Assembly (NCBI RefSeq): GCF_006345805.1
Contig: NC_043001.1
Span: 86,428,001 to 86,492,000 of the forward strand
Direction of reading: 5' to 3'
DNA: 64,000 bases
Origin: Octopus sinensis
Taxonomy: Eukaryota
Below the pieces are notes generated by a model. The model saw only the letters and a list, made by a program, of their open reading frames with translations, was not told where the DNA came from and did not search any database. The translations under genes were made by a program, and so were the position numbers. How positions within the stretch are numbered: position 1 is the stretch's first letter; each line of letters starts with the position of its first letter. Positions 611 to 57,369 of the stretch are shown in pieces.

Positions 611-625
611 GATTTGAGAATCAAG
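611..625 (+). CDS. Micro-exon, 15 nt, phase 1-1 (x-F-E-N-Q)
   Basis: cttttttcag|GATTTGAGAATCAAG|gtaagt: pyrimidine tract, AG and consensus donor; length divisible by 3; flanks paralogous to those of 3987. Confidence 0.75.
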
Positions 626-726
626 GTAAGTAGATAATTATTTCATAATATATTTAAATTCATAATGCTGCATTTAATTTTTAAAATTCATCAAAATTTA
701 TAAGTAAACAAGCCTGATTATGGGGT

Positions 727-1085
727 TAACAAACTCGCTATGCAACCGCGTAGTGAGACTGAACAATTTTTCGGGTTCAGCCCCACTGCACGGTACCTTG
801 TGCAAGTGTCTTCTACTATAGTCCCAGGTCGGTCAATGCCATGTCAGTGAATTAGATAGAAGGAAACTCTAAAAATATGTCTTTCTATCTGCATTTGTCC
901 CCACCACAGCTTGACAACCAGTATTGTTTTCTTTTCATCCCTGTAACTTAGTCGTTTGGCAAAAGGGTCGATAGAATAAGTAGTAGACTTTAGAATAATC
1001 AATGGGATCAATTTGTATTTAATTCCTCTTTTAAGTCAGTGCTCCAGTACGGTTGGAATTCTATGAGTAAAACAAGTAAAAGCCA
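727..1085 (+). mobile_element. Decayed octopus tRNA-derived SINE
   Basis: Alignable by eye to the intact copy at 11348-11762; duplicated at about 4100-4410 with the exon unit. Confidence 0.6.
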
Positions 1086-1329
1086 AAATATGAATCAGCA
1101 TATACCAAAAGACACACTTGTATCTATGGCCCATTGAATAGAAATGAAGATTCTCTTGTCTTGGCTGAAATACAGCTGAAGATCTTTTTGTGAAAGATCT
1201 GCAATGGTTTTCTGAAATTTTTTAAACTTTCAAAGGGATCTCGAAGTCCTATCGTTTGAATAAAAGAATATATTTATAATTAAGTGAAATACATTTTAAT
1301 ATTTTACACGTGAAAAAAAGAAGGTGCCA

Positions 1330-1560
1330 AGCTGACAGAATCGTTTGCGCGCCAGTCAAAAATGTAATGAGTTATGAGCCCAAAATTTGGTCCCCCTTGT
1401 TCGGGTCTTTTCTCAACAACATCATAACTCCACGGGTCATGGCGTTGGGAATTCCCCCGTTCTCCTCCCAGCTGATGTAGACATGCATCACAACGAATGA
1501 GGCATCTGCACATGCACATGATGTTGCTACAAGCCTCTGAAATCGAGTTAACGCGTGCTG
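1330..1560 (-). mobile_element. LINE-like fragment homologous to 3060-3250
   Basis: Shared ...catggcgttgggaattcccccgtt... block. Confidence 0.45.
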
Positions 1561-1977
1561 TAGGTATGCGTCAGGGCGGATGAACAGAGAATCCTTTTCA
1601 AAAATTTCCCTTTCCTCTCAGGATAATGTAGGTGAAGTTAAGTAGTTTGTGTCTTGTTGTAGAGCACTGATCTCCAGATAACAGTTGGGTCTTTGAAAAA
1701 AAGTGAAAAAACTCCTGCCTAATATTAGTCCCAGAAACTATGTCTCAATGGCCGCTCGGAATGAGTTATTATGTATATGAATACAATAAAGCCAATCTTT
1801 ATTCTGAAGATTATTTAGTCAAGATGGAACGATTGTGTTCATCTTCTGGCAAAATAGTAAAACGCAGTTGCTCAGAAAATTCTAAATAATTGTATCTGAC
1901 ACCACTCTTTTATTTAGTTATTTATTTATTGTTATAACAATAACAAAAAACAAAAGCCAGAAAAAATTTTTGTTGCA

Positions 1978-53304: not shown

Positions 53305-53622
53305 GTACGAGATTCAATATTTTTACCAGCTGGAGTTCGCCATAGAGATATGCTTGTCTCACTGTCTCATAACAATTATTAAAGGCACATAGAAAATATT
53401 TTAATGTCCAAGATTTAAAATGTTACTTCTGGTTGTTAATACAATGCAAGTGTTCAAATTTAAAAAAAAAACAATATTTTGATCATTCTGAAAATTTCCG
53501 CCATGTTAAATCCAATGAGTATAAGTACAATAATATAAAAATCAAAGTAATTAATTCAATGTAAAATAAATTTATATTATATTCTTATGTAATGTTTTGA
53601 ATAAATTATCTTTATTCTACAG

Positions 53623-53889
53623 GTGTAAATGTTTATGGTCACGTGAAAAAAACATCAGACACTAATTGCTTAGAAACTCTCAACAGAATAGATTTTAGTA
53701 CGCCTGACTTTGTTGCTAGCATTCAGGCTCACCCACAAGGCCAGACTGATATCCCCAGACCATCCGAATATCAATTTTCACCTAGATTTTCAATAACAGT
53801 AAGCCAATACCAAAGTGCGAACGCTGAAACATTTTTGTCCGTGCATTTCAATATACTTGGCAAGTTTGTTCGAGCAGGAGGAATTTTGA
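53623..53889 (+). CDS. Coding exon, 267 nt, phase 1-1 (GVNVYGHVKKTSDTNCLETLNRIDFSTPDF...FVRAGGIL)
   Basis: ttctacag acceptor, gtaagt donor; overlaps ORF 53643-53897; high-complexity protein sequence. Confidence 0.85.
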
Positions 53890-54092
53890 GTAAGTAATAT
53901 ATATTTTCTAAAGCTAAATATTAATAATTTTGCTACATTAAAATTAAGGTTTGGCTGTGTGCTAAGAAGTTTACTTTTTAACTATTTGGGTCAGAGGTTA
54001 TGAAAAATACAGAATATAAAGTTATAAAGTAACATAACTACTCAACTTATATTTTCATTTGTTTCCTCTCTGCCTCCACATTTACATGTAGG

Positions 54093-57052
54093 CATACATA
54101 CTTACATACATACATACATACATACATACATACATACATACATACATACATACATACATACATGCATTCATACATACATACATACATACATTCATACATA
54201 AATACATACATGCATACATACATACATACATACATACATTCATACATACATACATTCATACATACATACATATATACATACATTAATACATACATACATA
54301 CATACATACATACATACATACATACATTCATACATACATACATATATACAGTCATACATACATACATACATATATTCATACATACATACATACATTCATA
54401 CATACATACATACATACATTCATACATACATACATACATACATTCATACATACATACATACATACATACATTCATACATACATATATACATACATATATA
54501 CATACATTCATACATACATACATATATACAGTCATACATACATACATACATACATACATTCATACATACATACATACATGCATACATACATACATACATA
54601 CATTCATGCATGCATACATGCATACATGCATACATACATACGTACATACATACATACATACATTCATACATACATACATACATACATTCATACATACATA
54701 CATACATACATACATACATACATTCATACATACATACATACATACATACATACATACATACATTAATACATACATACATACATACATACATACATTCATA
54801 CATACATATATACACACATATATACATACATTCATACATACATACATACATACATATATACAGTCATACATACATACATACATACATACATTCATACATA
54901 CATACATACATGCATACATACATACATACATACATTCATGCATGCATACATGCATACATGCATACATGCATACATGCATACATACATACGTACATACATA
55001 CATACATACATGCATGCATACATACATTCATACATACATACATACATTCATACATACATACATACATACATACATTCATACATACATATATACATACATA
55101 CATTCATACATACATACATACATACATACATACATACATACATACACACATACATTCATACAAACATACATATTCATACATACATACATGCATACATACA
55201 TACATACATTCATACATACATACATGCATACATGCATACATGCATACATACATACATACATTCATACATACATACATACATTCTTACATACATACATACA
55301 TACATTCATACATACATACATATATACATTCATACATACATACATACATTCATACATACATACATGCATACATACATACATACATACATACATTCATCCA
55401 TGCATACATGCACACATGCATTCATACATACATACATACATACATACATACATACATACATACATTCATACATACATACATACATACATTCATACATACA
55501 TATATACATACATTCATACATACACACATACATACATACATACACACATACATTCATACATTCATACATACATACATGCATACATACATACATACATACA
55601 TACATTCATCCATGCATACATGCACACATGCATTCATACATACATACATGCATACATACATCCATACATACATACATACATACATTCATACATACATACA
55701 TACATTCTTACATACATACATACATACATACATTCATACATACATACATATATACATTCATACATACTTACATACATACATTCATACATACATACAAACA
55801 TTCATACATACATACATACATACATGCATGCATACATACATACACACATACATTCATGCATACATACATACATACATACATACATACATACATACATACA
55901 TTCATACATACATACATACATACATTCATACATACATATATACATACATTCATACATACACACATACATACATACATACACACATACATTCATACATACA
56001 TACATACATTCATACATACATACATTCATGCATACATACATGCATACATACATACATACATGCATACATACATACATGCATGCATGCATACATACATACA
56101 TACATACATTCATACATGCATACATGCATACATACATACATACATACATTCATGCATACATACATGCATACATGCATACATGCATACATGCATACATGCA
56201 TACATACATACATTCATACATGCATACATACATACATACATTCATACATACATACATACATTCATACATACATACATACATACATTCATACATACATATA
56301 TACATACATATATACATACATTCATACATACATACATACATACATATATACAGTCATACATACATACATACATACATTCATACATACATACATACATGCA
56401 TACATACATACATACATACATTCATGCATGCATACATGCATACATACATACGTACATACATACATACATACATACATACATACATACATTCATACATACA
56501 TATATACATACATACATTCATACATATATACATACATATACACATTCATACATAAATATATACATACATTCATACATACACACATACATACATACATACA
56601 TACACACATACATTCATACATACATACATACATTCATACATACATGCATACATACATACATACATTCATGCATACATACATGCATACATACATACATACA
56701 TGCATACATACATACATGCATGCATGCATACATACATACATACATTCATACATACATACATGCATACATACATACATACATACATTCATGCATACATACA
56801 TACATGCATACATGCATACATGCATACATGCATACATACATACATTCATACATGCATACATACATACATACATACATTCATACATACATACATACATACA
56901 TACATACATACATACATACATACATACTTGCATACATACATACATTCATTCATACATAAATACATACATACATACATGCATACATACATACATACATACA
57001 TACATACATACATACATACATACATACATACATACATACATACATACATACA
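54093..57052. repeat. About 3-kb variant (CATA)n microsatellite in the last intron
   Basis: CATA with CATT, CATG and CACA variants; source of the spurious 797/824/673-aa ORFs. Confidence 0.95.
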
Positions 57053-57196
57053 TAGACAGACAGACAATTTGTTTTCAATCTTGAATTAATCTTCAAAACC
57101 TTATTAAAGAAAAACATTTAAGATTAATTAATTCCAAAAACTATTATACTGTAAAGATAAATAAATATTTTGTTGACACGTTTTTTTTTATTTCAG

Positions 57197-57369
57197 GTGA
57201 TTATGTAACCGAATTCCAATGCATTGAAAAGCCCCCAAATCTGATGGTGTTGTCTAACAAAGCAGGATTATATAATGAAGTCATTTACCTAACCCCTACT
57301 GGAAGTTTATCCTATTGTTTTACGAGGTTTGACACTGATCGCATGTGTAATGACAATCTACCCATTTAG
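57197..57369 (+). CDS. Terminal coding exon (SDYVTEFQCIEKPPNLMVLSNKAGLYNEVIYLTPTGSLSYCFTRFDTDRMCNDNLPI*)
   Basis: tttcag acceptor in phase 1, open to TAG at 57367-57369, AATAAA 43 nt downstream. Confidence 0.85.

Follow-up and report, generated by a model that had tools for sequence, protein, structure and literature searches.

We analyzed a 64,000-nt stretch of the Octopus sinensis genome (assembly GCF_006345805.1, contig NC_043001.1, positions 86,428,001 to 86,492,000 of the forward strand), hereafter called the window, in which a run of very short exons precedes three conventional 3′ exons. Our analysis indicated, with high confidence, that the window belongs to an already annotated ITIH-like gene, that its micro-exons encode a hinge ahead of the C-terminal domain of the product, and that the micro-exon array has grown by tandem duplication. 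Directly established are the identity of the gene, its exon structure, its duplication history and the retention of this architecture in other octopods. The window is AT-rich (34% G+C), microsatellite-rich and clearly eukaryotic; coordinates are given as window positions, and all exons listed lie on the + strand.

The window, which maps to about 86.43-86.49 Mb of O. sinensis chromosome CM016863.1, corresponds to the 3′ end of the RefSeq gene model for XP_036358745.1 (P0011), a protein of 1136 aa with a gene range of 240.8 kb, in which precomputed Pfam matches place a VIT domain (PF08487) at the N-terminus, outside the window, and a VWA domain (PF00092) after it, as in other ITIH-like proteins. 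The last 300 residues of P0011 were identical to the translation of the 19 spliced window exons. Its VIT-VWA exons lie 185 kb upstream, and no exon of the VIT-VWA body was found inside the 64-kb window. The original prediction, made from the window alone, had placed the start codon and any signal peptide upstream, and it was right in this respect, since the N-terminus of P0011 (MAPRLLFVMLGAVFYLGMTANG), which is signal-peptide-like by inspection, is encoded 185 kb upstream of the window. From this N-terminus onward, P0011 consists of a duplicated VIT module, the VWA domain, a VTPLTSMVV segment, the hinge and a C-terminal domain of ~180 aa with conserved cysteines. The tandem duplication of four VIT-module exons, yielding two VIT modules per protein, is shared by P0011 and its O. 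bimaculoides orthologue P0141 (XP_052823892.1; 8002-12208 and 13896-20147 of the orthologous locus, L004).

A first homology search with the three conventional 3′ exons returned one protein, O. sinensis LOC115211872 (P0001; 204 aa, 81% identity), and it was a search with the O. bimaculoides paralogue P0002 that brought up P0011, at E = 0. The same query matched bivalve, brachiopod and vertebrate ITIH3/ITIH4 proteins at E = 1e-85 to 1e-156, with 34-39% identity across ~70% of the length to the bivalve and vertebrate ITIH proteins. VIT was detected by hmmscan in the homologues P0002, P0004, P0005 and P0008 at E = 1e-24 to 1e-28, the (Y/K)(N/K)FVTPLTSMVV segment of named ITIH proteins was present in the sequences compared, P0011 included, and the same C-terminal domain ends VIT-VWA proteins of 830-900 aa in O. 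bimaculoides, Argonauta hians and other cephalopods. By its VIT and VWA domains and its full-length similarity, the predicted product of the window gene is a member of the ITIH family.

The locus had been proposed as a hidden gene of the kind that predictors miss, and this proposal failed, because XP_036358745.1 already contains all ten of the exons then listed and six more. It is scarcely credible that the micro-exons and the Cys-containing domain constitute an independent small secreted protein that has nothing to do with the VIT-VWA exons. A small model of this type does exist, namely LOC115211872, annotated for a cassette 124 kb upstream; however, that model looks 5′-truncated, since its start is the first ATG in an internal phase-1 exon with an acceptor of its own. 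Moreover, the domain forms the C-terminus of a VIT-VWA protein in every full-length homologue, and the hinge chain of the window continues exactly into ...VTPLTSMVVTKYNVNEELFEKEYLPSR in P0011.

Each of the ten micro-exons of the original prediction was present at its coordinate as a segment of 15 or 24 nt, with a pyrimidine tract and CAG before it and GTRAGT after it, on one strand, in phase 1 and with a length divisible by three. When the window was scanned mechanically for exons of 6-60 nt between a YAG acceptor (at least 12 of 15 pyrimidines) and a GTRAGT donor, 11 sites came up on the + strand (the ten and 51093-51104) and none on the - strand, and 11/11 were multiples of 3 in length; block-wise first-order Markov (Markov-1) simulations of the window contained 0.9 such sites on average and never more than 4. 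The RefSeq model adds five 18-nt exons and a 75-nt exon at 52333-52407, which the original list had missed. Altogether, 15 exons of 15-24 nt and one 75-nt exon lie in the window, all flanked by phase-1 introns, and 15/15 micro-exons are multiples of 3 in phase 1. Together they contribute 95 aa (285 nt) to the 1136-aa product, 8.4% of its coding sequence, and the introns between them, ~3.6 kb long on average, measure between 244 and 6640 nt.

Read in phase 1, the chain continues in frame into the three conventional exons, as had been proposed, and runs through to the TAG stop at 57369. These exons comprise 53200-53304 (105 nt), which starts the C-terminal domain (GILIKPLNC...) and whose length is kept in 4/4 mapped homologues; 53623-53889 (267 nt, donor GTAAGT), which encodes the middle of the domain; and the terminal coding exon 57197-57369. 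The accompanying claim that no junction creates a stop codon holds for the ten exons first listed but not for the full set, in which joining 7950-7973 to 18722-18739 gives TGA, the sole pairwise junction creating a stop. The 11th scan site, 51093-51104, would be a 12-nt phase-1 exon encoding LTQT with strong splice sites (ttttccttttcag / TAACTCAAACTC / gtaagt); it occurs in neither the O. sinensis RefSeq model, XP_036358745.1, nor the O. vulgaris model, and it could be either a decoy or a cassette exon missing from the annotation. The intron between this candidate and 52333 also holds, at 51306-51632 (+), an open frame of 109 aa with protein-like composition and no Pfam match.

Along the window, the array opens with two 15-nt exons, 611-625 (phase 1-1, FENQ) and 3987-4001 (AIVIH), whose O. 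bimaculoides orthologues lie at L004 29955-29969 (FVNQ, 14/15 nt) and 32185-32199 (15/15 nt); a further micro-exon, YLPSR, precedes FENQ upstream of the window. Then come 7950-7973 (24 nt, VKDQEPEF), which belongs to the 24-nt family, 10283-10300 (18 nt, YPEAEI) and 16220-16243 (24 nt, GRDSVQDI). The 18-nt exon encoding GHGSDI at 18722-18739 (acceptor GCGAAG/, donor GTCAGT) has an identical copy at 16450-16467, and either may be the copy used in the RefSeq model. It is followed by 18984-19007 (24 nt, VVVPEAEI), 24906-24920 (15 nt, AAIQF), 26329-26346 (18 nt, VPEAKF), 30975-30992 (18 nt, VPEAEF), 35401-35424 (24 nt, YILPEAEI), 42065-42079 (15 nt, AARHF), 43708-43725 (18 nt, VPEAEF), 48156-48179 (24 nt, YILPEAEI) and 50769-50783 (15 nt, GVQPT), and the phase-1 exon at 52333-52407 forms the Thr/Pro-rich end of the linker. 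The peptide chain of the original prediction agrees with this reading apart from the initial D of DILPEAEI, which becomes Y in the spliced context, where the preceding exon (for 35401-35424) ends in T.

The resulting hinge between the heavy-chain body and the C-terminal domain has ~100 residues, is acidic (20 acidic and 5 basic residues in 100) and rich in Pro, Glu, Ala and Ile, and carries PEAEI-type repeats. It would be a flexible, disordered spacer, and it may serve as a spacer or processing region of variable length and sequence ahead of the C-terminal domain.

The micro-exons of the window group into about four families of paralogues. The 24-nt unit, together with ~150 nt of flank on each side, occurs in ~18 copies in the window, and in several of these the splice sites are lost (CTG or CGG in place of CAG, or AT in place of GT). 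Because the exons are paralogous and not independent, their multiples of 3 count as ~4-5 independent events, not as 10. All five 18-nt exons come from copies of this unit that lost the old acceptor, CAG being mutated to CTG in 10283, 26329, 30975 and 43708 and to CGG in 18722/16450; in each of them an AG 6 nt downstream is used (TTGAAG/ in 10283, TCGTAG/ in 26329) and the frame is kept. The orthologue of the 10283 exon in O. bimaculoides (DPEPVI, L004 41084-41101) has the same shifted acceptor. Decayed copies on the + strand include a degenerate unit at 24284-24313, which has CGG for the acceptor CAG and lacks a donor, and a second of the same kind at 41449-41468, as well as dead copies of the GHGSDI unit at 26052-26075, where the donor is mutated to ATCAGT, and at 30662-30685 and 43393-43416, which died the same way.

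The array has grown in tandem by multi-kb blocks, each with two to four micro-exons. A young tandem segmental duplication at 29512-48606 (+; 29512-35867 versus 42271-48606, 6.4 kb, 96.3% identity) carries micro-exons and fragments of long interspersed nuclear elements (LINEs), and further blocks of 84-98% identity surround it; internal duplications are 84-98% identical, against ~83-88% for orthologous introns. With every unit a phase-1 multiple of 3, copies could be gained, lost, shortened by the 6-nt acceptor shift or skipped with the frame intact, so that both the length and the sequence of the hinge could change quickly.

The window contains several other repeats. A 40-bp minisatellite (ATTTTCCAATAATGTTAATTTGTACATTAAACAATACATA) precedes copies of the 24-nt unit by ~90-140 nt and has been co-duplicated with them, its arrays being located at 16058-16642, 18801-18896, 30747-30881, 35097-35312, 43478-43612 and 47853-48067. 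Fragments of retrotransposons lacking long terminal repeats (non-LTR) are found within the duplicated blocks at 44366-46872 (-), and also at ~27.0-29.5 kb and 31.4-35.1 kb, with RVT_1 at E = 1e-10 to 1e-14 and a weak endonuclease match. An open reading frame (ORF) with zf-RVT lies at 23297-24127 (-), and another ORF, at 21162-21623 (+), encodes a GIY-YIG endonuclease domain (E = 2e-6) and probably stems from a Penelope-like element; a copy of this second ORF, 92% identical, lies at 25731-26603 of another O. sinensis locus, L001. The intron between 10283 and 16220 contains a ~0.9-kb tandem array of a 23-bp unit (GGGGAAAATTTTCAAAAATTTTT) at 13409-14346. In addition, a 3-kb (CATA)n microsatellite at 54093-57054 (740 copies, 87% matches) makes up most of the 3307-nt last intron, the O. 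bimaculoides counterpart of which has only 394 nt (L004 46609-47002).

Homologous loci in octopods were mapped with a purpose-written exact spliced mapper, and all mapped homologues had a common layout: a 73-nt VTPLTSMVV exon (YNFVTPLTSMVVTK..., ending in phase 1), then phase-1 symmetric exons only, and, at the 3′ end, exons of 105 nt and 267-291 nt and a terminal exon, which encode the C-terminal domain. The linker exons between these parts differ. Those of A. hians measure 45, 24 and 336 nt in P0016 and 24, 15, 33, 15, 33, 15, 33, 15, 33, 15, 33 and 39 nt in P0004, and those of O. bimaculoides measure 15, 15, 15, 15, 18 and 72 nt in the orthologue P0141 and 27, 24, 18, 15, 18, 15 and 66 nt in the paralogue P0128 (isoform X1). 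Across the octopod genes the number of phase-1 linker micro-exons was 2, 5, 6, 12 or 16. Micro-exon hinges are thus a trait of the octopod ITIH family, with independent expansions in different genes.

The window is syntenic with L004, in which counterparts of FENQ (FVNQ), AIVIH, the shifted-acceptor exon YPEAEI (DPEPVI), the 75-nt exon (72 nt, 44170-44241) and the three 3′ exons were all found. The interval from 10300 to 52333 spans 42 kb in O. sinensis, versus 3.1 kb from DPEPVI to the 72-nt exon in O. bimaculoides, and the 42-kb stretch holds 11 extra micro-exons. Young segmental duplications expanded the O. sinensis array from about 5 exons to 16 and left dead copies behind. In O. vulgaris, where the gene range is 248 kb, a separately deposited model (CAI9723174.1) contains a PEAEI micro-exon chain with a different exon set. 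P0012 (MetaClust) was considered as transcript evidence for FVNQ and AIVIH and was rejected, as it is an old O. bimaculoides RefSeq/UniParc model and not independent; its divergent tail had no match in the window.

A paralogous 3′ cassette is present ~124 kb upstream of the window and within the same gene range, at L001 (O. sinensis CM016863.1:86287921-86314523). It is annotated separately as the 204-aa LOC115211872 (~81% protein identity), whose exons are a 111-nt Thr/Pro exon (9998-10108, a further homologue of the 75-nt exon of the window), exons of 105 nt and 267 nt, and a terminal exon. Other features of L001 are a tandem duplication of 8.2 kb and, at 6058-6087, a 30-nt site resembling a phase-1 exon.

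We considered whether the weaker 18-nt exons belong to the mature mRNA at all. It is unlikely that some of them, with a GTCAGT donor or with an AAG or TAG acceptor that lacks an adjacent strong pyrimidine tract, are annotation artefacts. The splice sites of the five 18-nt exons are indeed weaker than those of the ten exons first noted, and exons repeated in identical form are difficult to position from short reads. Nevertheless, the 10283 exon has its O. bimaculoides orthologue with the same shifted acceptor, 18-nt VPEAE(I/F) units also occur in the O. vulgaris model, and an ab initio predictor would be unlikely to pick such exons unless introns supported them.

Paralogous exon copies diverge by 7.5% and their intronic flanks by 6.7%, with no sign in this comparison of purifying selection on the peptide of young copies. 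Since the copies diverge as fast as their flanks, constraint seems to act on splice sites and frame, not on residues. Equal divergence fits a loosely constrained spacer. It would also suit a simpler account, which in our estimate falls just short of an even chance, in which the micro-exons are constitutive, their expansion is a near-neutral by-product of segmental duplication within introns rich in repeats, and nothing is regulated beyond spacer length. Consistent with that account, the duplicated blocks carry LINE fragments and dead copies, and a single isoform is annotated; it is opposed by the annotation of homologous linker exons as cassettes in two O. bimaculoides paralogues, and by the orthologous FENQ and AIVIH exons, which are somewhat better kept than their flanks relative to O. 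bimaculoides.

Taken as a whole, the reading of the window as the duplicated hinge region of an ITIH-like gene has several points against it. The evidence for splicing consists of two gene models; the protein searches found no match to the window gene among Logan-derived or other transcript-derived proteins; one isoform is annotated for the gene; the divergence of exon copies at the pace of their flanks would also fit exons of little functional weight; and the function of the hinge is something we infer.

Exon skipping is annotated in related genes. In one O. bimaculoides paralogue, five RefSeq isoforms of 834, 829, 828, 823 and 823 aa were exact skip combinations of three 15-18-nt linker exons, the skipped sequence being the 18-nt PHFSDP, the 15-nt HPNRV, both of these, or the 18-nt DHLFQQ plus HPNRV. 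A second paralogue of the same species (P0017, P0136 and P0137) has linker-length isoforms too. Because the isoforms of the first paralogue are exact skip combinations, skipping is plausible in the window gene by analogy, and some of its hinge exons may likewise be cassette exons. That they are skipped in many combinations to give a population of secreted variants, as the original prediction supposed, is possible, though we regard it as doubtful. All units are symmetric and in phase 1 with a single pairwise stop junction (7950 to 18722), the two paralogues provide a precedent, and the exon sets of the O. vulgaris and O. sinensis models differ. Yet only one isoform is annotated for the window gene, the micro-exons make up 8.4% of the coding sequence and not most of it, and the peptides of the O. 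vulgaris and O. sinensis models themselves differ (AASRF versus AAIQF, VVLPEAEI versus YILPEAEI), which points to genomic divergence rather than to a choice of isoforms.

The likeness to the micro-exon genes (MEGs) of Schistosoma, on which the original prediction was built, was borne out in part. MEGs are defined by a coding region consisting for the most part of tiny symmetric exons and are reported to be restricted to platyhelminths (PMC4350168); they encode a signal peptide and produce variants by exon skipping (PMC4350168; PMC10526429). The octopus gene shares with them runs of very short symmetric exons, kb-scale introns, growth by duplication, fast evolution and, probably, a secreted product, and skipping could yield in-frame variants. 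Unlike MEGs, which encode small proteins mostly from micro-exons, it has 95 of 1136 residues in micro-exons, confined to a hinge between conventional domains of a VIT-VWA protein. It is not related to MEGs in sequence, and searches with the chain and with P0001 for MEG-family sequence membership gave only cephalopod and other ITIH-family proteins. Thus, the octopus array is MEG-like in part of its architecture but is not a MEG. Architecturally, the closest known case is S. mansoni VAL-6, in which a conventional domain gene with many exons includes one portion of very small symmetric exons (PMC4350168). The two share a conventional gene with a MEG-like micro-exon segment and differ in family (ITIH versus SCP/TAPS) and phylum; moreover, VAL-6 has been proposed to derive from recombination with a MEG, whereas the octopus array expanded in situ, starting from a small number of ancestral linker exons seen in Octopus and Argonauta.

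Vertebrate ITIH heavy chains, especially ITIH4, belong to the same family and have a variable linker just before the C-terminal domain, but the octopus linker is built of 15-24-nt exons, its junction lacks Asp-Pro-His, and its C-terminal domain is unseen by Pfam ITI_HC_C. The PEVK region of titin, an intracellular protein, is likewise encoded by tandemly duplicated symmetric exons, of ~75-85 nt, which form a Pro/Glu-rich disordered spacer whose length varies by exon number and skipping. The octopus hinge resembles it as a spacer of duplicated exons, with units of 15-24 nt and in a probably secreted protein.

The Cys-rich domain to which the cassette was said to be fused is identified here as the C-terminal domain of the ITIH-like family. 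Among ten cephalopod sequences, four cysteines were invariant and two more were conserved at a level of at least 90%, and the domain start followed P-[GAV]-[IV]-[ILVF]-[ILV]-x-P-x-x-C in 10/10 cephalopod homologues. Neither the conceptual protein nor a profile of its C-terminal domain had a match in sequence searches of Pfam and PDB, ITI_HC_C (PF06668) being absent even at E = 10. When the cephalopod C-termini were aligned by hhalign with the C-termini of PF06668-bearing proteins, the probability was 47.6% (E = 1.9e-4, 124 columns), with the LCF...LL.D..G..V.G and GxLGQF/GILxxY motifs in register. We tentatively take the domain as a divergent ITI_HC_C. An AlphaFold model of low confidence (predicted local distance difference test, pLDDT, 60) weakly matched the VWD domains of MUC2 and VWF (E = 0.03-0.05), and a VWD-like fold is a lead, not a result.

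In ITIH1-3, the protein is cleaved at DPHFII at the junction of linker and C-terminal domain, and ITIH4 has a protease-sensitive proline-rich region at the same place. The GDPHF(I/V/M) motif of the ITIH1-3 type was sought at the start of the C-terminal domain, and Asp-Pro-His was absent in 10/10 cephalopod homologues; DPHF is kept in bivalve, brachiopod, hemichordate and fish homologues. The junction in the window reads FHSPG/ILIKPLNC, and its lack of Asp-Pro-His argues that cleavage and transesterification chemistry of the GDPH type is probably absent here. A table in an O. vulgaris ink proteome lists LLFVMLGAVFYLGMTANGEPR, which equals residues 5-25 of P0011, and DTLPNIPGIFIKPFSCSNNLCLR, which crosses the junction between linker and domain in the paralogue P0014 (PMC10142993). 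Because the signal-peptide region is listed and the table may be an in-silico digest, we did not count these peptides as evidence of expression; if they were measured, these ITIH proteins would occur in ink with the junction uncleaved.

One broader interpretation, which we judge improbable, is that octopods have ITIH-like plasma or mucus proteins with a fast-evolving, combinatorially spliced hinge, possibly a protease "bait", as a device for innate-immune or host-microbe diversification. By analogy, such a hinge would function like the alternatively spliced bait regions of thioester proteins and resemble schistosome MEGs in architecture, with an independent origin in a mollusc and an expansion still under way (5 exons in one Octopus species, 16 in another).

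As a gene, the locus is ordinary and has already been annotated, and what sets it apart is an unusually long and recently expanded micro-exon hinge; a published description of micro-exon arrays in cephalopods or in ITIH genes was not found in the literature. The locus is useful for testing aligners and annotation pipelines that deal with micro-exons. It offers a natural example of a protein hinge evolving by the birth, death and resizing of micro-exons, in which copies diverged by a few per cent adjoin dead ones and copies that lost their acceptor survive as 18-nt exons. The family that hosts this hinge, ITIH, is linked to the extracellular matrix and to protease control. If the exons are used combinatorially, as the RefSeq isoforms of the paralogue suggest, the octopus gene would represent a second, independent case of MEG-style variation outside flatworms.

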